Positions 1 to 19,980 of a stretch of DNA of 64,000 nucleotides are shown piece by piece. The notes below the pieces were generated by a model that was not told the DNA's origin, did no database searches, and worked only from the letters and a program-made list of their open reading frames with translations. How positions within the stretch are numbered: position 1 is the first letter of the stretch; each line of letters begins with the position of its first letter. The position numbers and the translations under genes were made by a program. Source of the stretch: Selaginella moellendorffii (taxonomy: Eukaryota > Plantae > Lycopodiophyta); contig NW_003314301.1 of NCBI RefSeq assembly GCF_000143415.4, forward strand, positions 592,336 to 656,335. The letters are read 5' to 3'.

Positions 1-952
1 TATTTCTGAATTGAGTTTGTGATTTTGTTTCAGGATAACGCTTGCTATCAAGATTGACCACTGCTCCAAGGTAATCCATGAGCACTTGGCTGCTGCTCCT
101 CGAAATCTTGTTGTTGAGCTTTTGATGAAGAAGCAAAAAGAGGTGCCCTCTAATGTGGTTCCAAAGGAAGAACAGCATGTTGTTCCTTTGGATGACCACA
201 TTTTCGGCATGGAAGAGACGCTGGAGCGGGTTGTATCAGACTTGCTGGGGTCCCCTGTAAGCAGCAAGTGGGTTGGAGTCCATGGAGCAGGAGGTGCTGG
301 AAAAATACTCCTGGCCAAACGAGTATGTGACAACGATCAAGTAAAGGGGCTTTTTGATCCAGTTTTGTGGCTAACATTTGGTCAGTCGTTTCAGGTACGT
401 TCCTTAAGCTTATAATGCAACATATTGAGCAGCTATGGTTGTATCTCCTCAGGTGGAAGCAAAGAAACACGAACTTGCCAAGAAAATCCGACTAGAAGGT
501 GATCAGATCAGCTATGAAACACTGAAGAGGGGGCTTGATGGGAAGAGATGCTTGTTGGTGTTGGATGATGTATGGAAGTCCATCCATTTGGATTTATTTG
601 ATGTGGTGCAAGAGAATGGAAGCAAGATCTTCATTACCACTCGACAACGTGATGTGCTTGACAGTATTGAGTAGAGGTGCAATCAAAACCGAGATGGGGC
701 TTTTGGGAAAGGAAGACAGCATGAAGCTGTTCGCAGTCCACGCATTCCCAAACCAAAAACATGCTCAAGTCAGCAAGGTAGTAGTGGAGCAAGTTGTGGA
801 AAAGTGTGGGGGGCTTCCACTGGTCTTGAAGGTAATTGGCAGAAGAATGGCAGGCACACAAGATTGGGACTATGTTCTGAGCAAACTCAAGGATCAACGA
901 CTTATTGCTCTTGATGAGGAACAACAGGTACTGCAGCGACTCAAGCTGGGTT

Positions 953-1818
953 ACGATGCTTTGTTGCCTCTTGGCATCCAACAGCACTTTCTCTTCTTTG
1001 CAGCCTTTCCAGAAGACTGGCGAATTTGATTCTGGGATCTGTTCAGATGTTGGACAGGGGAAGGGCTGGTTTGTTGAGAGTGGCCCTGTGCCACGTGGCT
1101 AGTCCATGGAGAGACACGAGTCTTCACTGGTTCACCATGTTACACATATGTACATTTTCCATTCCATATATGCTATGATGGATCTTGAGCACCATCACAT
1201 GGTTTCACCTTTCGTTAGATGGTATCGGAGCAATGCCTAGGAGAGAGAAGAATTCAAAACCGTAGGATTAAAACTACACTTGCTACGGTGAATCGGAGCC
1301 TCCGTCTACGTAGACAGAAGTGTGCCCTAATCCAAGCGCTCCAGGCCTTGCAAGAGGCACTGGACAACTAAGAAACAAATCCGTCCAGTGCCAAAAATTT
1401 GTTTCTTAGTCGTCTAGTGCCTCTTGCAAAGCTTGGAGCACTTGGATTAGGGCACGCCTGTGTCTACGTAGATGGAGGCTCTGATTCACCCTAGCAAGTG
1501 TCGCCCTGATCTTACAGTTTCGAATTTTTCTTGCTCTCCCAAGCATTGCTCCGATACCATCTAAGGAAAGGTGATGGTGCTCAAGATCTGTCATAGCATA
1601 TATGGAATGGAAAATGTACATATGTGTGACATGGTGAACCGGTGAAGACTCGTGTCTCTCCACGTGGACTAGCCACGTGGCACAGGGCCACTCTCAACAA
1701 ACCAGCCCTTCCCCTGTCCAACATCTGAACAGATCCCAGAATCGAATTCGCCAGTCTTCTGGAAAGGCTGCAAAGAAGAGAAAGTGCTGCTGGATGCCAA
1801 GAGGCAACAAAGCATCGT
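953..1818. repeat. Long inverted repeat: arms 953-1380 and 1397-1818, 16-nt loop
   Basis: 1397-1818 is the reverse complement of 953-1380. The outer 119 bp differ at only 2 positions; the inner parts are more diverged, with indels. Loop is ccgtccagtgccaaaa. Confidence 0.97.
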
Positions 1819-1822
1819 TAGA
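1072..1822. mobile_element. Insertion in the NLR: fold-back element TGTTGAGAG...CTCTCAACA (1072-1699) plus inverted host flank, bounded by a 5-bp duplication TGGTT
   Basis: TGGTT occurs at 1067-1071 and 1823-1827. Removing the insert and one copy restores ...GEGLV-ANIAEATNVLERL in frame. TG...CA termini and a 5-bp duplication are LTR-like. Confidence 0.7.
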
Positions 1823-3344
1823 TGGTTGCCAACATAGCAGAGGCCACGAATGTTCTAGAAAGGCTCAAGAATCACGCACTTATCACTGAAGAACACTGCC
1901 CAGGGGAGAATAAGAGGTACAGGATTCACGATGCGTTGCTGGCTCTTGCTTTGCACATCCTGGAACAAGAAGGCCCAAAGTGTTATTTCAAGGCTGGGAA
2001 GATGAGGGACGTGGGGGACGCCTTCACAAGTACGTACAGCAGGATTTCACTGTTTGCTTGTAGAATTTCGGAAATCACTCTGCCTAAGAAGAACAGCAGC
2101 ACCACTTTCCTGCTCTTGGATTATAATCCCAGTCTCACTGCATTGCCAAGCCTCTCTTGTTTCAAACTCTTGAAGGTTTTGTGCCTGAGTCACACTGGGG
2201 TGGTAAGTTTGCCACATAACATTGGACAGCTCAAGACTCTGGAGACTCTGGATTTGTCTCGGAATGATTCACTCGAGAGCATCCCAGCTTCACTAGGCAA
2301 CTTGACGAATTTATCATATATGAACTTGGGATCCTGTTCGAAACTCAAGTCTTTCCCTGTGGATGCTTTGCTCAAACTCACCAAGCTGGTCTACTTCAAG
2401 GCAGAGAAAAGTTTGAGAATGTCGACATGCCACAGGCCGCATCATCGGCTTTTCAAACATAAGAAATGTTTAAACAGGATATCCCATGCTGACAACACTC
2501 CACCTTCAGGGATGCCAAAACTTGATTGGCATGGCCACCATCTCTCAACTGACATCACTCAAGCTCCTCAACATCTCCAACTGTTTCTCCTTGAAGGACC
2601 TCTCCATCTCGTTCCTTCCAAATCTAGAGACAGTTCTTCTAGATAGCTGCAACGAAGTGACCACCATCAACATATCCGAGTGCCCATCATTGAGAGTTGT
2701 TCAAATCGTTGACAATCATTGGCTTGACCGTGTTGCATTCGATGGCAAGCTCCCACGACTTGAAGATATAATCCTTGGTGGATTTGCAAAGCTTCCAGAT
2801 GTATCTATAGTTGCCATGGATGCGTTCCCACAGCTGACGTCGCTGCAAATAAAGAATTATGGTATTAACCAACTACCAGAATGGTTCACATCATTCACAA
2901 CGTCGAGAACTCTGGAATTTTGTTTTTTGGAGAACTTGGATGTGATACCTGATGGTGTTGCAAGGCTTCCTCTGCTAAAGAAGCTTAATCTGGAAGGTTG
3001 CATGAAGATCAAGACGTTACCCTTTGCAGATTCTGAGGACATCTCCTTCTATCCATCCCTGGAGTACTTATGCTTGATAGGCACATCCGCCTCTGGAGAG
3101 CGCCTCTCACAACGCCTTTGAAAAAATGACAAGTTTATATGGAACCTCTCACAACGCTTTCGTATTATGAATATTAAACATTCACATTTATAACCATGTT
3201 ATAAATTTTTACTAAGAGATTCACAAGTTCATTGCCACGTTTACTGTCCACTTAATACGAGAATTTCCATTAGATGTCACATAAGCTTCAAACGTTAACA
3301 AGAAATCTGAATCGTTAATTATATCAGAATCTAGACCGTCGCTC

Positions 3345-3560
3345 CTGGTGGAGCTGGATCGGCCGTGGCTGCAGCTGGGGCTACTTGCTCGTGGCTGCAC
3401 TGCTGCATTGCTGGATGGAGCTGGATCTGTGTTGCTAGATGGAGTTGGACCAAGTTCGATCACTTCCTGGAGCTGCTTGTTAGAGCTAGATTGCTGCACC
3501 GCTGTGTTGTTGGATGGAGCTGGATAGCTGCTTGCTCGGCTGTGGCTGCCTGGCTAGTGC
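3345..3560. repeat. Degenerate low-complexity repeat ((tgga)tggagctggat units)
   Basis: At least four imperfect copies of a tggagctggat-type unit (~3348, ~3416, ~3440, ~3515) in GCT-rich sequence. Confidence 0.55.
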
Positions 3561-3666
3561 TGGATTGCTGCTTGCTTGGCTCACGCTGCTTGTCTGGTCG
3601 GTCCGCTACTCGCTGAATGTGCTACTCCTGGAGAGAAAACAAAAATAGCTCTAAGAAAAAGTAACA

Positions 3667-4750
3667 ACCAAATCGAAAACATGTAGTTGCTATGACACAA
3701 GCAAGAACTCCGGAAGTATTGGAGAGTACTCCCTGTTACAAGCTTAGTATCAGTTCCGGCCAGAAGTACTAGTTAATTACCGCCAATATCCCGACTGCAA
3801 GAATGCATCCAAACCCTGCATATCAAAACAAACTTAAAGCTGTATTTTACCTGGGCCATCATACACAGAGAAGGCGAACAGACATGGCTAAGCTGCGTAA
3901 GACCGGCCAAGAAAACCAATGGATTGCATCACCTGCACATAGTAAAACAATGCTGCAAATGCTTAACCAACAACGAAGAGCTAAAATTGAGCATATATAT
4001 ACATACCTTCCTCGAAACATGAACGAGAGAGTAAAACATGAGAAAGGGTGGAAGAAAGTTTGCGCTGGTTTCTGCGACAAGTCAAGAGGGCTTACGTCGG
4101 TTTCGTTGCCGAGGTTTAGCTTCGTCGCAATGTACTTCTTGACCAGCAATATGGGAAGTTGCCTATCTCTGCGTGTTTAGAGAAGTCGGTGGAGTTGAAA
4201 TCGTCTTACGTTATTCTCACCTAGGGTGTTATGATCGGGAAGCACCGAGTCCTCACTCCTGTGGATCCGACAAGTCAGACGCCAAAGAGAAAAATAAAAC
4301 AGAGAGAGATCGAGAAAAAGAGACAACCTGGAAGCGAGGAGGAAGAGTAGCTTTGTAAAGTTCTCCGAGAGCAGAAATGCACGAAACTAAGAAACCGAAG
4401 GACTACTGTGCAATCAAGCAACTTCTAGGATTAAAACTTAGCATTGCATGAAACTGATACAAGCAATTTACCTGAATCACTGCTCTAAGATTTGTGCTCT
4501 TTGTCCTCTTCGCTCGAGCTTGTTATTTCTCACTTAACTTTCATGTAATTAAATAGAGCCGGGGCAATCTCTTCCTCTGAAAGTGTGATATCTTCCACAG
4601 GCGAGCTATATGCCTGAAAAACAAAACTGACAATGAGAAGTAATGCAAAGTATGAGCGAACTCACGGTTTTCTGCCAGAATGTAAACCAGACCACTCCCA
4701 ACGAACCAAACGTGAAGAAAACCGGGGGCCAGTTATACTCGTGAATCAAG
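3667..4750 (-). pseudogene. Decayed PHT4/ANTR (SLC17-type) anion transporter
   Basis: Colinear spliced remnants: LIHEYNWPPVFFTFGSLGVVWFTFWQK | AYSSPVEDITLSEEE | VMQSIGFLG..LTQLSHV | GLDAFLQSG | GVLSNTSGVLA. They match plant PHT4 motifs, with internal deletions, frameshifts and stops. Confidence 0.8.
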
Positions 4751-5199
4751 GTACAGTGAGCACCATATCACTCCGAGCCAGTTAAGTTTCCATCCAAAAG
4801 AGAAACGAAACTTTTTTCTGGATGGAAACGAATGTAGGTGTCGGAAAAAGAAAATGAAAATCTTTGCTCGCGCCTCGTCCTAAAAGTCGTGACGTACGTT
4901 TGAGGCGATGGAGCTGGCATCGCGGCCGACATTGCGACTAGAGCCGATCCCTCGGGCGTAGATTCGATCCTGTAGATACGAGAGAGCTGTGCCATAGATG
5001 AGAACCCCGCCTCCAATCCACGCGATTGCTCCAATCTGCTGCTATCTCTCTCGCTTGATCGCGCAATGCGGAGCGCTACCGGCGGATTGTCTCCCAGCCG
5101 TAGCGCCTATAAACCATGTATCAACGTGGCACATGCTACGTAATGAAATTGTGAAATTGTCATGAAAATTTTTTCATTGCGTGATTTCAACTGAAAACT

Positions 5200-5870
5200 A
5201 CTAGCGATTCATACATATTGAATCCTCAGATTTCTCTAGCCATGTTGACGACGCAAAGTTACTCTTTGACAAGATGCCGGAATGGGACGTCGTCTCGTGC
5301 ACGACCTTGATCTCCCTATTTGCGCTTAAACAAAGGCTAGGAGACTCAATGCCCAACAATGGGCATCTTGAAGAATCCAAAAAGGTGTTTGACGCCATGC
5401 TATACAAGAACTTGGAATCCCTCCACGCACTGATTGCCGCTGCGAAGGTCCTCGATTCCGTGCAAGTCCGAGACATAGTTTCCTGGAACACTCTCGTCGC
5501 TGCTTATGCCCAGAACGGTCAAATGGATCGAGCAAGCGAGTCTGATTCTAGGTCGGCTATCTAGCTTTTGAGTTCTCCAGCAGTTCTATGATCGCTGGGC
5601 AGGCCGTCCAAGTTTTGATTGAGATGGTCATGGAAGCCGGACGAGCTAACTTTCGCGAGCGTTTAAGGGAGGGCTGCTCGAGCAAGGCAGACGCTACTTC
5701 CTTTTGATCATCTCGGACCTCGGGATCAAGCGGTGCAGTGCTTCTCGGCGATGGTGGACATTTACAGCCGAGTCGGGCTGCTCAAGTTTGCTGAAGAGCT
5801 GATTGAGACGATGCCGTTTGTGCCCAGAAGAATTCGTTGCTGGGGTCTTGAGCTGCCGAAAAGGTTGTTT
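5200..5870 (+). pseudogene. PLS-class PPR protein remnant
   Basis: Fragments AKLLFDKMPEWDVVSCTTLI, NGHLEESKKVFDAM, RDIVSWNTLVAAYAQNG and CFSAMVDIYSRVGLLKFAEELIETMPFVP, broken by deletions and frameshifts. Confidence 0.85.
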
Positions 5871-6635
5871 CTTGGATCCTGCGTATATTTTACTTCACGA
5901 GCATGGCTTTGCCATTTCACTGCGTGTTTTTTGAGAATTTCTTTCTTGATCACAAAGACAAATCCTATTATACAAGTATGACAAATACTAAATATTAATA
6001 ATTTGCTACACGTGCTTGATTTACTTAATACTAAATAAAAATTTATAATTAAAACACAAGATTAATTTTATTGCATATTAAATGGTGTAAAGGCCTAAGT
6101 GTACAACTATGATGCCATATACTAATATTAGTATAGTGAGATTTTAGTAGCTATCGGATTGGTTTCAATCTGGACTATTCACTCTTGTATATAAGTTATG
6201 ATTTTTGGGCTAATTGATATGCATATTTTTTGTATTCCCTTTCTATAATGGTAGAATAAAATAGAATATACTAAAAAGTGTTTAAGAAAGTTTATAAATT
6301 ATAAATACAAAATTAACTTAAATGAATAAAAACTGTTAAATGATAGAATATTTTAAAATACCCAAGCATATTTTAGGTATATTCACTACCCCTTACAAGT
6401 TTGCAAAAATTTAAATTTATCAGAATATTTTAAAACACTTATACCAAAAATTGAATCTTTATTGGTTTTCTAAGTTACAAATTGTGTTGTCCCCAAAAAT
6501 CCGGGCCCAAAATTTACAGCAGCCACCACCACTCCTCCATCCATACATTCGTGAAGATGAAAACGAAAGTAAAAAAAGAAAAAATGAAAATAAAAACAGC
6601 AGAAGAAAAACTCTCTATGCATGCACCGTGGATGG

Positions 6636-9505
6636 CTACATACTCGTCGTATCTCCTTGCAGCTGTGGAACAAGGCACTCTCGCGGATTGGAGAAAAAGT
6701 AGTCCTCCTCCTTGGGCCTGTCTGGGAGAACTCGTCTCTCCACAGGAGATCCCATTCGCTCCGCGTGGAGATGCCTCACCGCCATCGCAAACTCGTCCCA
6801 CCGAAACGTTCCAGATTCATACTCGTCGATGAGTTCCACCAGACTCTTCCTGTCCAGTAAAACTGTCTTGCGGAATCCCAAGTACCTGGGAAGATTGCAC
6901 AGAAAAAGTTTTAGAATCGAGACATTGACACTGCAAGAAAATCAAAACAACCAAGGATCTCGGTTCTCGACAAGAACTCTACTTTGAAAGCAAGCAAGGA
7001 CACGAGTTCTTGTCACGAAACTGGAATGAATGAATGAAAGGACACAAAAACAAACTTTGGTTCGATGAAAAGCGATGAAAAACCACTTTAAATCGGCCAT
7101 GGAGCTCGACAAACCAAAGAGATCCAGCACACCAACAAGGACGAAGAAAAAAGCTGGAGAGTTTTAGCCAGTACCTTCGGTGTCCTTCCACGACTTTAGC
7201 CATATTCCCATCGTAAGTTGGAATGAAGACGTCACTGGCGAGCGAGATGAGATAATCCAAGGCTGCCATTTGCGAGGACCTGTTCTGGAAAGGTCTCAGC
7301 TCCTCCTCCGTGAGAAGCATCTCCTTTCTCACCTGCAAAACAAGTTTTGATTCTTCGAAAACTTAGAACAAGTTAAGACGCACAAGATCGAGCGAGAAAA
7401 CTTACGATCTTTGGAAAAGCTCGCCTTACGACTGCCATTCGCTTGTCACCTCCGTAGATCTCTCCAGCAGCGATGTATACTTGCATGCCACTGTCGTATC
7501 CCAGCGCTCGTAAAATCAAAGTCGTCTCTTCCGGAGTGAGTGGACAAAGCCCGTCTTTTCTCTTTTGGACACCGTCAATGATCTTCTCCTTCCACCACGG
7601 GTAAGCGTATCTGCAAGCACGAAAACAATTCCATCGTGTGTTAAGTCACAGAGAACAAAGTTTTAAAAGAGAGGAAGGAGAAGAAGAAAAGTGTGAGGGA
7701 ATGTGACAAACACTAGAAAGTTGCCACGACAAGAGTTGCAGAGAGTTCTTTTTACTTTTCTCTACTCTCTCGCACTGTGAAGGATGAATTGACTTGCCTC
7801 ATTCTCGTGAGCTCCTTGGCTTCTACTCTCTTGCAGCCGTGAGTGCATCCAGAGAAAGCTAGCATGTCCATCTCGTAGCGGAGATGGAGAGCCATGAATG
7901 GACCCTTGGCCTGCAAGAGCTTGACGAGCTTATCACCGAGGAGCTCGATCTGGGGAGTGAAACGAAGAGAGTGGAAGTTTACGCGGCACCGGAGCTTCTG
8001 GATCTCGTCCGGAAGGCCATTGTTTGCTAGGCGAGCGTCCGTGCGGTTTAAGTGGAGGATTTTGTGCTTCTTGATCAGTGGAAGTATCTGTGACAAGAAA
8101 GAAAGAAAAAGTCGTCCATCAACTTAAGAAACTTGAGAAGAACTCCACCACAAACTAAAGGACTAGACAAAACACTCGCATCAAAGAAAAGGAAGAACTA
8201 TAAAACTAGAAAAGAGAAAAACGAAAGCCAGACTCGACCGAAACACATCAAGAAAAGGAAGATGGATTGATGAATCCGAGATTACCACCGAAACACATCA
8301 AGAAAAGGAAGACCTCGGAACTAGGATTGATAGAACGAGAGCTCACCTGGTTGAGATAATATGACTCGTTGGACCAGCTCACGGGAGGCATGGTATAGAC
8401 AGCTTGGTTTTGCAGCTTCTGTGCGAATTTGGCTGGAACTTGTTTGATGATCCGGACTTCGTCACGGAGAGAGTTTATAAAGTGATCCACGTCGAAGATA
8501 TCTCCAAAGTCACTGCGAGTAATCAAGATAGTCACCTCCATTGTTTCTTTGATACCATGAGATTGAGTGGAAGCTTACCTGGGATCGGCCCAGAACGATG
8601 TCTTGTCCAACTCTGGAACGATCAAAGTAACGTTTAAATACTTGGCGATGGCGACCATATCACATATCTGCACGAGAATTGGTTCTAGAGTTATGAAAGG
8701 AAAGTAGAAAAGTTTGTTTCGATCCTGAAAAGCTCACCGCTGCTCGCATCTGGTTGAGCCCTCCATTGCACGAAACCATGAGATAGCCATTGTTCTTGTA
8801 AATTCCTGCGGTGATCAATCAATCAGCAAACGTTAGAAATAAAGGCCAAAAAGGAGAAGAAAAGTGACTCCGAAAGGAAGAAAAAAAAAAAGAAAACCAA
8901 GAATCGAGACAAAGAGAGAAGTTTTCGCGAGAGCAAAAGATCCATTCAAGTAGCGTCACGGCCAAGAAGATCCTTGAGACAAGCAAAACAAAAGAAGCAA
9001 AGAAAAACTCTTATAAAAGTTTGGCCATACGAGAGACGAGAGAAAACTTACTTCGAGGTGGCGGAGATGGATCGAGCAGCAACGCCGCGGCGGCCGGATG
9101 ATCCAACCGATGGACAAGAGGGCGATGGAAATCCACGCTGCTACTGCCGCTGCTACTCCCACCCGAGTCGAATCGATCGAAGCACGAAGGCCATCGCTTT
9201 ACCAAATGGAGCCTCCACAGCTCGCCCAGCGCCGTGAGTTGGATGATACACGTCCACAAGAGAATGCTGGTGCTCGCGCGGAGGAGCCAGACGTGGAGCC
9301 GCGATCGATGCGAAGAGGGCGCTGGAATCATGGCCGAATTGCTACTCTTCTTCTTCCTCCCGCGCTGGAAATTCTTGATCTTGGCTATGGCGGCTACCTC
9401 CAAATCCTTCCACCGCTGCTGCTGGAATCCATCCTCCTCTTCGTTCTCCTCCTGCTCTTCCAGCCCTTGCTCTTTCTCTTCCTGTGGATCTTCCTTCCGG
9501 GGCAT
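6636..9505 (-). CDS. RRT: GT106 / O-fucosyltransferase family, rhamnogalacturonan-I rhamnosyltransferase (RRT)-like; multi-exon
   Basis: [33 protein letters not shown]; [21 protein letters not shown]; [21 protein letters not shown]; [18 protein letters not shown]; [15 protein letters not shown]. Canonical introns. Confidence 0.92.
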
Positions 9506-10243
9506 CTTGGTGGCTCATTCGCGCGAGAATTCGTTCAGCATTGGGTGGAGCGCGAGAGATCGCGAGATCGCGCAAATTGGGCAGGATGGTTTCGTCCGGG
9601 GCAAGCCGCCCACCAAACAATCCAACGAACCAACAAACCCAGCGAAGAGAATCGAGACCGGAAGAACAACCAAACAAACCGAAAGAGAAAAAAATGTCCC
9701 TTTTCTTTCTACCCCCCTGTTCTTGGTTCGCGCAATTCGCGAATCTTGGCTCGATTCCTCTTCCTGGGCAGCGGCGATGGGAGGAAGCCGGAGCGATTGC
9801 GCTCGCAATTCCCAAGAAGATCACCTGGGGCGATGGATCTCCTCCTTTGCCCCCTCTCCCATTCAAGAGAGGGAAAATGGGAGCTCGCTACAAACAAGAA
9901 CTACTCGCAAACTACTCCTCCTCTCTTCTTGCATTGATCAAGAAATGTAGGAGCACCGATCCATCCCCACGCTTTCAATGTGGGCGCTACCGACTTTAGA
10001 TCAGATCTAGGCGCGCGCGCGCGAGAGAGAAAGAGGGGGAGAGGGGAAAAGAATCGATTGATCTGTTCGACCACCAAAGAATCTCTCAAAGAATCGGCCG
10101 TATGCGCGGCAGCCCACCTCGGATTCCTCCCCAAATCGCGAGCCCAAAGAGCCCTAATCCCTCTGTCGGGCCCTCTGCGACGTCACGGACGCCGCGATCG
10201 CCATCGCCTCTCTTTCATCCTCTCTCTGGTTTCTTGCTCGTAG

Positions 10244-10285
10244 TGACGTGGCACTGACACGTCAGTAATGACGTGGCGGGCCCGC
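10244..10285. promoter_or_regulatory. Cluster of ACGT (bZIP/hex/ABRE-type) motifs plus GGGCCC upstream of RRT
   Basis: TGACGTGGC at 10244 and 10269, ACACGTCA at ~10257 and GGGCCC at ~10278, all within ~40 bp. Confidence 0.5.
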
Positions 10286-11934
10286 CGCGCTGGCCCCATC
10301 CTGGCCGTCGGTGGGGCGCCCAACGGGCACACCGTACGGTGGGAATATCCCGGACCTTATATGGCCCATCCGTACACATTAATAGCCAAGGTATGTGCAG
10401 CGTGTCTGCTGTCCAAAGTCATCAAGGCGCCAGGACGGTGCCATTTTCTCATTCTTTACGACCAAAGCTTTTTTGGCCTGGACGACTGATTAAAAAAAAA
10501 ATCCATTCCTTCTCCGTGTTTGGCTGTCTGGAAGACCACCATGAGAAACCTTTAAAGAAAATTTAATCACCCCTGGTCATGGTCGACACTACAGAAAACC
10601 TTTGCTCTTCTTCGTAGATTGGTACCGCGTTCCATCGTTTTCGCCTTTGGTTTCAACAAAAAAGACAGCCTTTGGCAGGGACTAAAGCCACTGGTTTTCG
10701 CAAATCACTCCGTTTAGCGAGCCTAGAATAAGAATAAGAATGCACCGAGTGAACTGTAAAGCACAGAGACTTACAGCCGTGCGCCGGACGAACAGGGCAG
10801 CGGTGGTCGCCGCAAAGACGCCGTTGCTTTGGTTTCGGGGAAAGCGCCATGAGTCGTGACCAGTTTGTTCGATCCATGATTTTCCATGGAGCTTTGCGAG
10901 ACGTTGCAAAGTGGATCAAGCAAAGCAAACCTGTTCGAAACAAAGACAATCACACACACACACACTAAAAAACACAACTTGAGACGAAAGTGAAACGGGG
11001 TACCTTTCCTCGATTGGGATGTTTAAACACCGGGTAAGAAGAGCGATCACGATCAAGGGAGTCCCCCACCACAACGTCTGTTTCCATGTAGAATGCGCCG
11101 ATAGAACTAACGGGACCCCGGACCCGATCAATGGAATGCTTGTCACCGCTGTTCATATCGACCAGTCAGTATACTTGGAGAATCTAAAGCAGGGGGAAAT
11201 CATACCCCACACTCCCCAGATACCTTTGATGGTCCTACTTTGATTGTTGGCCACCTTTAGCATTCAAGCGCCACCGAAATTTTCCCCTTTGACAGTACAC
11301 CGACTGGACAAGTGGACGGAGGATCGTAGGCCGGAACTGCAACCTCAGCAGTCTAGATTTGACTCGAAGTAGCACTGCGATTCACCAGCGTCAAAGACGA
11401 GTGAAAAACACCAGAGAGCATTCATGTTACGTCTGGAAGCTGAAAGTAAACAAGCGGCCAAAAAGCCTGTAGTGGTGAGTGGTGAAGGATAAAAAAACGC
11501 TTTCAAGCGTGAAAGGTGTAGAGATACCTCTCTTGCTCTGTACGCCAGATCCAGCAGCGCGTATACGTTGTGCTGATATAACTTTGTGCTTATACGCATA
11601 AAAAACCACCTGCGACTCAGCTTTCAGTCTCGCTTATAATACGAGTTGAATCTGCGAAAGAAGAGTTACTCGGGAAGAGAAAATCGCCACCACTAGCTCT
11701 CATGACGAGCTCAGGCCGTAAGGATTCAAGGCAGACTTTCACCTCTCTCGATAAAATACGTAGCTGCGAAAGGGCTTACGTATCACAATTCCTTTGAGGA
11801 CCGAATCCTGTGGAAAAACCACGTGAAACTGGCGCAGCACTAAGTTGGTAGCAAATTGAGCACGACTCGAGCAAGCACGAGATGGAGATATCGAGCGCAT
11901 ACCAATTAATTCCACGCCTACGTCAGGGAGCTCG

Positions 11935-12342
11935 TCATTTGTCTCTAGTTTTCTCGCCTTTAGATCGCTTGCGTGTTTTCAATGGCCACTCCCAGCGCCA
12001 GGATTCTCCAGAGCTATAAGCTTCTAGAAAAAGTCCTCGAGCTGGAAGAACAAAAGAAAGAGAAGATCGTATGAAGTTGCTAGGAAATAGGAAAATCAAA
12101 AGAACTCATACCTTCCCAATATCCAGGATGTTTAAAATCCACGGCCGTGCCAAGGAGCCGCGACCATTTCTTCGGCTCCTCCTAATCAGCATTCACAAAG
12201 AATTTCCAATCCTAGCGAAGATTTCTACTTCGATCGTGGAACTACCCGAGCTTGACCCATTGGTGGCGCTTCATCACTCCGTCTGCGGAGGATCAAAGCA
12301 GCCATTTCTTCCAGATTATCAGGAATGCGCACCTGTCGCCAT
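11935..12342 (-). CDS. Putative 70-aa Trp-rich microprotein, 4 exons (not in the ORF track)
   Basis: Exons 12342-12333, 12282-12257, 12181-12112 and 12041-11935, joined by GT-AG introns of 50/75/70 nt, give MATDGVMKRHQWEEPKKWSRLLGTAVDFKHPGYWEARGLFLEAYSSGESWRWEWPLKTRKRSKGEKTRDK*. A telo-like AAACCCTAG lies immediately upstream. Confidence 0.5.
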
Positions 12343-12456
12343 AAACCCTAGCTTGAGCTAGAAGAAAGAGTGTTACAGGAATCGAGCCTGACACTTCGGC
12401 TTAACCCGGGTTTAGCCTTACCACGCATTTCCATTGATTACATGTATAACTCAATC

Positions 12457-14271
12457 TCAGAGATTTTTCGCTGTGGCCTTCGCTAGGCGAGCACTCGACT
12501 CGGCGATCTTGCCAAGAAGAGTGCTAACTTGGAGTTCGTAGTTGACTGTCAAGTTTTTCTGTAGAGAAACCAAGGATTCAAGCAACTTAAATTTGGAGTT
12601 CCAACATACCAGTTCCAGCAGTAGGCCAAGATGTTTTGCCTGGAGCTGCTCGAAAGTTTCTTCGTGAGAGTAGCTCTTATAAGTCAGCGTGGCGCCTCCA
12701 TTAGACGACTGGAACATCAAACGTGAAGGATATAGAAAAGAACTAAACAAGAAGGGCGTTTGACGCGAACCTCGTTTTGGCTGGCTTGGATGCCTTCCTT
12801 ATCATCCAGGGGAGCCTACAGACGAGCGTTTTAAACGGGAAAAACACGTACAAAGTGAAGTTACCTCAGTTTGTGCGAGTCCTTGCTTTCCACCGTCGCC
12901 TTTAGATGGCTTGCTAGCAGGAGAAGTTTTTTTCAATCCGCTAATTGGTTGTTCGTTCCTGGGATTCGGACTACTGCTTGAAAGCTGGAGCTGAAAAAGA
13001 ACAAAAGCAAGGCTTAGTTTTAAGGAATTATATTTCTACCAGTGAGTTCTGTGTAACTTGGCTGTCAGTGCATGATTTCTTCGCAGACCATTCATGGTTC
13101 TCATCGTCATCACTATCTGGTACAACCAGAGTTGCAACAGCGAGCTTTTCCTGAGAAACACGTTAACAACGGTAGTACAGTCGCTTGCTTACCTCTTCGT
13201 GTCCTCGTTTTTTCCCGCTACAGGATGAAATGACGTTCGCTCCCGTTATCTTGACGTTTACTTCTGTACAGTTCTGTGTTCTCACCTCGACAGCAACACC
13301 TAGATCATTATTCAGGTTGTTCGCCTCGACAGCAGCACGAACTGTGGGTTCAATTTGACATGTCCCATTGTTGTGCTTGCCTTCCTCATTGTGATTTCTG
13401 CATAGCCCGTGAAGAGTTAACATTGAGAACTAAGTGATACGTTAACACACCTGAGAAAATCCTGAAGGTAGTCAACCAAAGGATAAATATGAAGGTAGTC
13501 TACAGCTTGAGATGCACGTACTTCCCATCCATATGATGATATAAAATCGCCCTTCGCCCTGTATGTAACACCGCAAGAAGCTTTGAGACAAATAAGAGAA
13601 TAAAACTTGTCGCACATTACTTTAGGAAGAGACTCTCCAGCGGCATCCATTCGAAATCTTCGATCCCGCCGCCCAACTTAGGCTGGACATGGTCCTTGCA
13701 GACCATGATATACAGACGAGTGTTGTCCCCTTTCTGACTCATGGCACGGAAATGGTGGAAACGTTGCTCAAGTTGTACACAACCCGGCTCAATCTCTGAA
13801 GGAAAGAAGGAAAAGAATAAGAGAAGAATGAAGAAACCAAGTTACTCACCCACATTTTCCCGAATTGCCGAATACGCACAGTCGAGAGGATCACCATTGT
13901 CCGCTACTTCCTTTTCCACAAAGGACCACAGACCACGAGTGATCAAGCTCTTCACAAGCAAGCAACTCTTCCTGTCCTTGCTTAGAAGGAGAACCGCAAC
14001 TCTGGTAATGGTATCACCGGTTGCGGCACCTTCAGCGGCAGAGAAAGCTGCCTGGACTCTCGCTTCTGCTAGGTCCGTTTCTCGTCCAGGCTTCACGTAA
14101 TGAGCCAGTCCAAGACGAAAAAACACTGTCTTGCGGCAAAACTCCAGAGGATCGTAGTACTCGAGCTCTAGAACAGACACACGTCTTTAACAAACGCTAC
14201 CAAAAAAGAAAGAAAAAGAACCTGGGAATGACTTGTGTAAGTAGAAGTAGTAGAGCCATGCCGTAGCTTCT

Positions 14272-19429: not shown

Positions 19430-19690
19430 TTGTGTTCGACTTTGTCCAAGAACACGTCCTCGGCGTTCTCTACACTTGAGGTACATGTCGACGAGGTGCT
19501 CACGCAGGTAAAAGGTTTCCTGAAAACCAGACTGTACGACGTGACTGTGAATCTTTTGTGCATCTAGCAGGCTTCCCAGAGAACCACACTCGCGGATGAG
19601 ACGAGCCAGAGTGAAGACGTCGGAGGAGCATAGCTTCGAATCGAGGTGCTCTCTCAAGTTTCTTTGCTTGCACAGTCTATAGTGAGTCCT
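19430..19690 (-). pseudogene. PPR protein N-terminal remnant
   Basis: TLARLIRECGSLGSLLDAQKIHSHVVQSGFQETFYLREHLVDMYLKC, followed by a frameshift and truncation. Confidence 0.75.
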
Positions 19691-19980
19691 CTGACCAGCC
19701 TTCTCATACCCGCTGCTAGAGTTCTTCCTGCGAGCACCATCACGTTGAAGCCTCTGGCAACAGGGGCAGAGCAAAGGTGAAAATTCGTGTTCCAAGTGGC
19801 AAACATCAAGGGCTCGACACACTGGACAAAATCGTGTACGACTTTGGCTCCGAGTTTGTGACTTGTGAAAGCCACTTGCTTCGTTGTTCCCTGGTTACAT
19901 CCACGTTGACGCTTAGCACCGCATTGCTACGGTGGCCTTGTGGACTCTCGTGAAAGAAAGAAGCGATTAAGATTAAGAGT

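Follow-up and report, generated by a model that had tools for sequence, protein, structure and literature searches.

An exon of an NLR pseudogene in the lycophyte Selaginella moellendorffii contains a long palindrome, the outer stem of which is NLR coding sequence. The fold-back lies near the start of the window (the whole stretch of DNA that was analysed, 64,000 nucleotides in length) and is a real, young, haplotype-specific 751-bp insertion in that exon. Its history probably began with a retrotransposon-type insertion, after which snap-back (fold-back) break repair was primed by an internal inverted repeat of the element. The capacity of the locus to form dsRNA is most likely an incidental by-product, and there is no sign of selection for dsRNA. 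With both arms transcribed, the RNA would feed Dicer. The fold-back is regarded here as candidate raw material for a hairpin locus and not as an established regulator.

Comparison loci were taken from GCA_000143415.2, and the proteins of paralogs bear NCBI names for S. moellendorffii; L005 is the allelic haplotype, and L002, L003 and L004 are paralogs. The features of the host gene and of the fold-back, in window coordinates, are as follows.

1–3124, + strand: NLR (NB-ARC-LRR) pseudogene, its 5′ end truncated by the window start; intron at about 393–452
953–1071, + strand: NLR part of the left arm, the RNBS-D/WHD exon of the gene itself, in situ and joined to the upstream exon
1027–1029, + strand: in-frame TGA, younger than the duplication; C is retained in the allele and, at 1744, in the inverted copy, giving CGA
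1067–1071, + strand: left copy of the target-site duplication TGGTT; a single TGGTT is present in L002–L005
1072–1219, + strand: 5′ end of a high-copy repeat, starting TGTTGAGAG, most likely an LTR end; delimited by DNA depth and the match boundary of another copy
1220–1380, + strand: inner left arm, belonging to the older portion of the inverted repeat; differs from its partner by 22 substitutions over 161 bp
1381–1396, no strand: loop of 16 nt, from repeat finding and folding
1397–1559, − strand: inner right arm, which pairs with 1220–1380
1560–1699, − strand: inverted copy of the 5′ end of the repeat; retains CG at 1663–1664, absent from the left arm, and is missing the 10 bp at 1195–1204
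1700–1818, − strand: inverted copy of the NLR flank 953–1071; contains the inverted target duplication AACCA at 1700–1704
1819–1822, no strand: four filler bases, TAGA, resembling neither arm nor NLR, or a leftover of the 3′ end of the element
1823–1827, + strand: right copy of the target-site duplication TGGTT, where the NLR frame resumes

Repeat finding returned a single inverted repeat with arms at 953–1380 and 1397–1818 that are approximately 90% complementary. In self-BLAST, 953–1818 matched its own reverse strand over 881 columns at 89%. When the two arms were aligned globally, 389 of 432 columns were identical, and the differences comprised 29 substitutions and four indels (2, 2, 2 and 10 bp). 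These three analyses bear out the architecture described in an earlier sequence-only reading of this DNA, namely arms of 428 and 422 nt around a 16-nt loop. The folding check recommended in that reading, carried out on 953–1818, yielded a strong hairpin of −762 kcal/mol, compared with −265 ± 6 kcal/mol for shuffled sequences (z = −84). The palindrome is genuine and lies far outside what chance would produce. The span of 953–1827 given previously is correct at its start, but its end takes in the four filler bases and the right copy of the target duplication; the arm itself ends at 1818.

The outermost 119 bp of each arm (953–1071 and 1700–1818) encode part of the NB-ARC/WHD region, with the translation YDALLPLGIQQHFLFFAAFPEDWRI*FWDLFRCWTGEGLV, and tblastn recovered this peptide from the right arm as well, on its minus strand. 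Translation and tblastn both confirm the proposal that the outer stem is an inverted copy of the RNBS-D/WHD exon of the gene. The host gene, in which Pfam identifies NB-ARC and LRR_14 domains, was likewise correctly recognised as a pseudogene. Its lesions comprise a frame change near 665–670, the TGA codon, the insertion, and a deletion of approximately 390 bp in the LRR region with a frame change at 2479–2525. In tblastn, the paralogous protein P0151 matches the pseudogene in frames 2, 3, 1, 1 and 2. After the insertion, the NLR frame ending ..GEGLV is picked up again at 1823 as ANIAEATNVLERL. Protein searches with this post-insertion piece returned mostly generic LRR proteins, with only P0003 and P0004 being informative, and a homolog search with a 206-residue piece turned up no gene model for the locus in the window.

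The 751 bp between 1072 and 1822 are confined to one haplotype and are flanked by the 5-bp duplication. Locus L005 is collinear with window positions 1–13306 at 90–97%, and passes directly from window position 1060 to 1823. The empty site, reading GEGLV-AN with one TGGTT, is also found in paralogs L002, L003 and L004, and protein P0004 reads GEGLV-AN as well. An RNA contig from a paralog joins 1066 to 1823, with five shared letters that are ambiguous. A fifth locus, L001, is a paralogous 3′ fragment of an NLR that begins within 2 nt of the same point as the insertion, which the favoured model leaves unexplained. The sequence upstream of this NLR fragment shows no relation to the insert or to the other loci compared.

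An assembly artefact, in the form of a chimeric fold-back read or a misjoin, is extremely unlikely to account for the structure. A chimeric read would generate identical arms, so the 29 differing sites and four indels, one of 10 bp, count against it. The right arm furthermore retains ancestral states that have been lost from the left (C1744 and CG at 1663–1664), the exon/repeat junction at 1071/1072 occurs in exact RNA contigs from independent studies, and a DNA sequencing run shows depth in 30/30 bins. What can be said for an artefact is that the loop and the right junction are not explicit in the independent data listed, a point that also weighs against the favoured history.

The outer part of the insert belongs to a repeated element. 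In the DNA run, depth reached approximately 8,500–10,000 over the repeat end, compared with approximately 2,000–4,000 over the NLR. The match to a contig from another copy of the repeat stops exactly at 1699, the mirror position of 1072, and the 5′ TG terminus is common to another copy. The 3′ terminus of the insert is missing, and its last bases are TAGA. The element, whose terminus is TGTTGAGAG, is most likely an LTR retrotransposon or a solo LTR. Two LTRs, a PBS or PPT, and gag-pol were not found in the insert, which holds roughly 150–310 bp of one element end, twice and inverted, with no internal region; a lone end of this kind is compatible with a remnant but is no proof of LTR class. Further copies of the insert or of its repeat parts are absent from the 64-kb window and from the 94 kb of related loci (L001–L005), including by sensitive BLAST, and the foreign tails of contigs (past 1138, 1219 and 1699) are absent from the same sequences.

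The two arms have not diverged evenly. Positions 953–1219 differ from their partner at 7 of 267 sites (2.6%), compared with 22 of 161 (13.7%) for 1220–1380 (Fisher p = 3e-5), while the two haplotypes differ by 3.7% over 7 kb. As the inner divergence exceeds that between haplotypes, which in turn exceeds the outer divergence, the inner repeat would predate the insertion and the outer part would postdate the split of the haplotypes. Three derived bases, T960, C1005 and A1047, are common to both arms, in contrast with the allele and all paralogs, which indicates that the right arm was copied from the left flank of its own haplotype. The left arm subsequently gained G981A and C1027T. Besides the inner mismatches, arm-specific variants lie at 981, 1027, 1106, 1128, 1141, 1179–1180 and 1195–1204.

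These shared bases also bear on the idea that a mobile fold-back or gene-capturing element transposed as one unit, bringing the NLR fragment from elsewhere. A 5-bp duplication around the whole 751 bp and a long terminal inverted structure would be expected of such a unit. The captured piece is nevertheless exactly the sequence adjoining the insertion point; it stops at the target duplication and carries the three derived bases of this haplotype's own flank. The right end (..CGTTAGA) is no element terminus, and no second copy exists in the window or the 94 kb of related loci. Transposition as one unit is thus very unlikely, and capture of the NLR fragment by a mobile element is rejected in view of the exact adjacent flank and the haplotype's private variants. 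Joining of two like (U3) ends by an integrase was also considered, and is insufficient alone because host flank lies inside the inverted copy.

It is proposed that a repeated element, with an imperfect inverted repeat already inside it (now 1220–1380 and 1397–1559), inserted after the GEGLV codons and generated the 5-bp TGGTT duplication. At a later time, a double-strand break on the right side of the internal repeat would have been resected, allowing the single strand to snap back on that repeat and its 3′ end to be extended along its own strand. Extension would have copied the 5′ end of the element and the 119 bp of adjoining NLR exon in inverted orientation. The extended end may then have been rejoined with the opposite side of the break at a point 4 bases away from the right target duplication, with loss of the rest of the element. 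The outcome would be a long palindrome with NLR coding sequence as its outer stem.

Several observations sit uneasily with this order of events. The pieces of the arm are also found apart: other copies of the repeat diverge past 1219, and 1225–1374 is present in a different RNA contig with different flanks, so that the arm may be a mosaic of several template switches. Only 4 nt separate the rejoining point from the right target duplication, a coincidence that the model does not predict. The internal inverted repeat is known from this insert alone.

A mosaic arm would be expected if the whole structure had arisen by one-step patchwork repair, with no prior integration. A break would have been filled by a template-switching polymerase or by captured extrachromosomal cDNA of the element: the repeat end and a second sequence would have been copied, followed by snap-back over the flank, and TGGTT would be a microhomology or a by-product of a staggered break. 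The four filler bases at the right junction fit such an event, and a cDNA end would account for a copy that begins exactly at the terminus of the repeat. An exact 5-bp direct duplication combined with an exact terminus starting TG is, on the other hand, the signature of an integrase. Divergences of 2.6% and 13.7% within the same arms are also impossible from a single event, unless the inner repeat was copied ready-made. One-step repair is therefore rather unlikely, and insertion followed by snap-back repair is preferred.

The preferred history has parallels in other systems. Palindrome formation primed by short inverted repeats occurs in yeast, in Tetrahymena and in mammalian gene amplification. 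Next to the chromosome-scale palindromes produced by fold-back priming, the tract copied here is much shorter. Break repair by snap-back synthesis at structure-forming sequences has been described (PMC5728401), and the synthesis-dependent MMEJ form of it shares with this locus an inverted copy of the sequence adjoining the junction, a short loop, filler bases and loss beyond the break. Relative to typical templated insertions, the tract is much longer, at about 270 nt, or 119 nt if the whole element was already palindromic.

The sequence-only reading had further proposed that the fold-back is an NLR-silencing hairpin, and that the pseudogene may have become a trans-acting regulator of its NLR paralogs. 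Its structural premises hold. Transcripts of the pseudogene exist and are spliced, and in three studies RNA contigs pass from the exon into the left arm; an untranscribed locus, which the reading had named as grounds for rejection, is not what is found. Exact contigs with 0 mismatches cover 747–1171 in X5 and 930–1100 in X7. Within the left arm, a GT dinucleotide occurs at 1139–1140. The 119-bp outer arm is 87–96% identical to the allele and paralogs, and of its 99 21-mers, 26–88 from the left arm and 27–88 from the right match each of the four other copies with no more than two mismatches. Perfect 21-mers occur against L002, L004 and L005, reaching 45/99 for the right arm against the allele L005, with none against L003.

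A functional hairpin-RNA (endogenous inverted-repeat) locus would use the active NLR promoter to produce a dsRNA of approximately 420 bp, from which DCL4, DCL1 or DCL3 would generate siRNAs that silence the allele and a few paralogs in trans. Its near-perfect stem, the left-arm transcripts and the matching 21-mers are all consistent with such a role. Orthologs of DCL1, DCL3 and DCL4 have been reported from every land plant studied, lycophytes among them (PMC5569507). NLR-targeting miRNAs have been proposed to originate from inverted repeats of NLR parts (PMC10575705), and endogenous inverted repeats such as MuKiller and IR71 can work in trans (PMC10827316). Against this role, the loop and right arm (1172–1822) yielded no RNA contig from the host locus in three RNA runs although upstream exons were covered, contigs being unable to prove absence. 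The structure is present in one haplotype only, and NLR sequence makes up only 119 of approximately 425 stem positions. The arm substitutions, 25 transitions and 4 transversions, give 13 wobbles and 12 mismatches in plus-strand RNA; this decay is neutral, without the strand bias that would preserve pairing. With the anatomy explained by insertion and fold-back repair, a silencing role, and with it the regulator claim, is possible but unsupported, and a functional hairpin locus is quite improbable.

Similar loci are known from other plants. Like the endoIR or hairpin siRNA loci, such as Arabidopsis IR71 and maize MuKiller (PMC10827316), the fold-back is a long, near-perfect inverted repeat, and read-through transcription would make it a source of RDR-independent dsRNA. 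As in MuKiller, an inverted partial duplication includes a transposon end and lies downstream of an active promoter. The stem is approximately 0.42 kb long, compared with approximately 3 kb in IR71. In a further difference, only the outer 119 bp are genic, and the structure is polymorphic between two haplotypes. The host lineage also differs, as S. moellendorffii is reported to be without DCL2, phased secondary siRNAs (phasiRNAs) and a 24-nt peak (PMC5569507). siRNA amplification would therefore be missing, which counts against a functional hairpin locus.

The inverted-duplication model of MIRNA birth, attributed to Allen et al. 2004 as cited in PMC10575705 and PMC3237417, offers a second comparison. 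As in that model and in NLR-derived miRNAs of the miR482/2118 type, the fold-back is an inverted duplicate of part of its would-be target family (NB-ARC RNBS-D/WHD), and a young one that retains extensive complementarity to the NLR family. It departs from the model in lying inside its parent gene and not at a separate locus, and in that most of the stem is transposon sequence. Rfam returned only sub-threshold generic hairpin matches, with MIR7724 scoring 58 bits where the gathering score is 100.

It is decidedly improbable that the fold-back is already a newborn, active hairpin locus, in which read-through from the promoter of the dead NLR would give dsRNA and DCL4 or DCL1 would produce primary 21-nt siRNAs that damp a few related NLRs. 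If it were, the locus would represent a natural, polymorphic first step of the inverted-duplication model, reached via transposon-seeded fold-back repair, in a lycophyte reported to be without phased secondary siRNAs. The NLR family of this plant is very small. Since the insertion is carried by one haplotype and not the other, selfing the sequenced plant would give progeny with 0, 1 or 2 copies, making silencing directly testable. If no small RNAs are made, the fold-back is a simple repair scar in a pseudogene.

The birth of hairpins and miRNAs by inverted duplication requires raw material of this kind, which is rarely seen so young. The locus is a natural and fully resolved example, with its empty-site allele, of how inverted duplication of a gene fragment can arise. 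It illustrates a route in which a transposon with an internal inverted repeat would enter an exon, and later break repair would stretch the palindrome into the host gene.

The window contains one long inverted repeat, in which a left arm at 953–1380 faces a right arm at 1397–1818 across a 16-nt loop (1381–1396). A repeat search of the window detected it as four collinear pieces, self-BLAST returned a single match of 881 columns at 89% identity, and aligning the left arm globally to the reverse-complemented right arm gave 389 identical columns of 432. These results bear out the fold-back and loop proposed in the sequence-only reading. Its outermost 119 bp had been described as an NLR's RNBS-D/WHD exon in inverted copy, and translation of both arms agrees: on the left arm they lie in place within an NB-ARC-LRR gene and encode the RNBS-D/WHD region, and the right arm encodes the same peptide on its minus strand. 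Folding as RNA, a check suggested by that reading, yielded a single hairpin at −762 kcal/mol, whereas shuffled sequences gave −265 ± 6 kcal/mol.

The fold-back is unlikely to be an assembly artefact. A chimeric fold-back read would generate identical arms, whereas the observed arms differ by 29 substitutions (25 transitions and 4 transversions) and four indels. Furthermore, the right arm retains ancestral states lost from the left, and exact RNA contigs of independent studies contain the exon-to-repeat junction, although the loop and right junction are not individually visible in the read-contig tables.

The NB-ARC-LRR host gene, on the plus strand, is a pseudogene with the following features.
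~393–452: normal intron, spliced out in RNA contigs
near 665–670: lesion, frame change
1027–1029: lesion, TGA
1072–1822: lesion, insertion
2479–2525: lesion, ~390-bp deletion and frame change

Its relatives form a small Selaginella moellendorffii family comprising P0004, P0151/P0228, P0152, P0153, P0036/P0227 and P0003; the proteins carry the NCBI species name S. moellendorffii and are encoded at loci of assembly GCA_000143415.2. The full-length member combines NB-ARC and LRRs with an RPW8-like N-terminus that scores below threshold.

Locus L005 (GL377654.1:537384–560048) is collinear with window 1–13306 at 90–97% identity (96.3% over 7 kb of flank), and is therefore taken as the allelic haplotype. 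In L005, window position 1060 runs directly into 1823. The paralogous loci L002, L003 and L004 are uninterrupted at this site and carry a single TGGTT, the P0004 protein reads ...CWKGEGLVANTAEAVNVLERL... across it, and a paralog RNA contig passes from 1066 to 1823, five letters at the joint being compatible with both sides. Without the insertion, the reading frame passes from GEGLV directly into ANIAEATNVLERL. The empty L005 site, the uninterrupted paralogs and the single TGGTT thus identify 1072–1822 as a 751-bp insertion with a 5-bp direct duplication on either side (1067–1071 and 1823–1827). The insertion is heterozygous, being present in one haplotype only.

The haplotypes differ in other respects. 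The window NLR lacks ~390 bp of LRR (at 2479–2482) found in the allele and in every paralog, and carries 7 additional bases near 663–669; the allele (L005:10664–10666) lacks window 496–724 together with 5 bases where the insertion sits. The two alleles are therefore dead through separate lesions. The first LRR block (window 1823–2479, L005:11001–11676) is only 88% identical, compared with 95–98% in neighbouring NLR parts, suggesting either conversion by paralogous genes or rapid divergence of the LRRs. The haplotypes also carry one 208-bp segment in opposite orientations (window 5354–5561 and L005:15174–15381, 97% identical on the opposite strand), with no flanking repeats in either. The ~300 bp at window 19443–19741 are 90–91% identical, reversed, to L003 1430–1739 and L005 5583–5892, which lie inside or beside PPR genes located 5′ of the NLR copies.

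The insert and its palindromic structure can be divided as follows.
1072–1219: end of a high-copy repeat, from DNA-run depth and contigs of other copies
1220–1380 and 1397–1559: inner arms
1560–1699: inverted repeat end
1700–1818, minus strand: inverted NLR flank, whose first bases are the inverted target duplication AACCA
1819–1822: TAGA, matching nothing

Summed DNA-run depth is ~8,500–10,000 over 1072–1219, against ~2,000–4,000 on the NLR. In a contig of another repeat copy the match stops exactly at 1699, the mirror of 1072, and foreign sequence follows; several other copies diverge beyond 1219. The repeat end begins with TG at 1072, which, with the 5-bp duplication, is compatible with a putative LTR end. 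A second LTR, an internal region and a 3′ terminus are all absent from the insert.

In a six-way alignment, T960, C1005 and A1047 are common to both arms but absent from the allele and the three paralogs, indicating that the right arm was copied from its own haplotype's left flank once the haplotypes were diverging. G981A and C1027T occur in the left arm only, the right arm and allele keeping the older bases, and so arose after copying; C1027T changed CGA to the stop TGA at a CpG. Similarly, a CG at 1663–1664 is kept in the right arm but absent from the left, and other repeat copies appear to have it. The transition excess (25:4) and the CpG/CHG contexts of the two changes whose direction is known would fit repeat methylation.

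Divergence between the arms is uneven.
NLR part: 2/119
1072–1219: 5/148
1220–1380: 22/161

Outer divergence is 2.6% and inner 13.7% (Fisher p = 3e-5). Given a haplotype divergence of 3.7% between window and L005, the outer part is about as old as the haplotype split or younger, in agreement with the empty site in L005. The inner repeat exceeds the greatest possible age of the insertion several times over, and most likely arrived ready-made within the element.

Palindrome extension from short inverted repeats occurs in yeast, Tetrahymena and mammalian amplification. The simplest history here, and a fairly probable one, has three steps. A retrotransposon-type element with an imperfect internal inverted repeat would have integrated; a double-strand break to the right of that repeat, followed by resection, would have let the single strand snap back on it and its 3′ end extend along its own strand, copying the end of the element plus 119 bp of exonic sequence; the extended end would then have been linked across the break via 4 filler or remnant bases, with loss of the rest of the element. 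Break repair by synthesis primed at structure-forming sequences is a described route (PMC5728401). Alternatively, the whole element (1072–1699) may already have been palindromic and the newly copied tract 119 nt only, as 2/119 and 5/148 do not differ significantly. Against the snap-back history, only 4 nt separate the rejoining point from the target duplication, the arm may be mosaic, since a different RNA contig has 1225–1374 between other flanks, and the history is read from this single copy of the element.

L001 (GL377572.1) is a paralogous locus with only the NLR 3′ half. Homology between L001:5990–6010 and window 1819–1827 starts at GA/TGGTT, ≤2 nt from the insertion's right junction; the sequence upstream holds an 86-bp tandem duplicate and a Vps15-like kinase-WD40 gene, and the repeat is absent from it. 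The common breakpoint might reflect an insertion hot spot, transduction by read-out from an element, or chance.

An untranscribed locus would have counted against the sequence-only reading, but zero-mismatch contigs to the insertion haplotype from three studies, identified as RNA by spliced joints, cover 32–165 (spliced to an upstream exon), 449–626, 747–1171 and 930–1100, and show that the pseudogene promoter is alive. In runs X1 and X5, no contig from this locus covers 1825–2052. One X1 contig joins the unique left flank (930–1138) to an arm showing two differences besides a CG after 1106, which is the state of the right arm; past 1138, where the window has GT, 132 foreign nt follow. This contig may reflect cryptic splicing, polymorphism of the left arm or a mosaic of both arms in the assembly graph; in the last case, the right arm would be transcribed.

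It is nevertheless improbable that the fold-back silences NLR relatives in trans. Besides the live promoter, 26–88 of 99 NLR-part 21-mers from the left arm and 27–88 of 99 from the right match, at ≤2 mismatches, each of the other family members compared, perfect matches reach 45/99 (right arm and allele; none to L003), and orthologs of DCL1, DCL3 and DCL4 have been reported throughout land plants (PMC5569507). Yet the structure is heterozygous, S. moellendorffii reportedly lacks DCL2, phased siRNAs and a 24-nt peak (PMC5569507), and three RNA runs gave no contig from the fold-back locus over 1172–1822, where repeats break assembly graphs and contigs cannot prove absence. In plus-strand RNA the transitions produce 13 G:U wobbles and 12 A:C or C:A mismatches, giving no sign that pairing is preserved.

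In structure, the fold-back resembles endogenous inverted-repeat siRNA loci such as IR71 and MuKiller (PMC10827316), and suits the inverted-duplication model of MIRNA birth (PMC3237417), which has been extended to miRNAs that target NLRs (PMC10575705). Viewed as a product of repair, it is like snap-back templated insertions, but much longer; unlike the fold-back retrotransposon structures noted elsewhere in this genome, it also holds host exon sequence within the inverted copy. The fold-back is a real, well-resolved, young structure of a known kind, and small RNAs arising from its NLR portion would make it more interesting.
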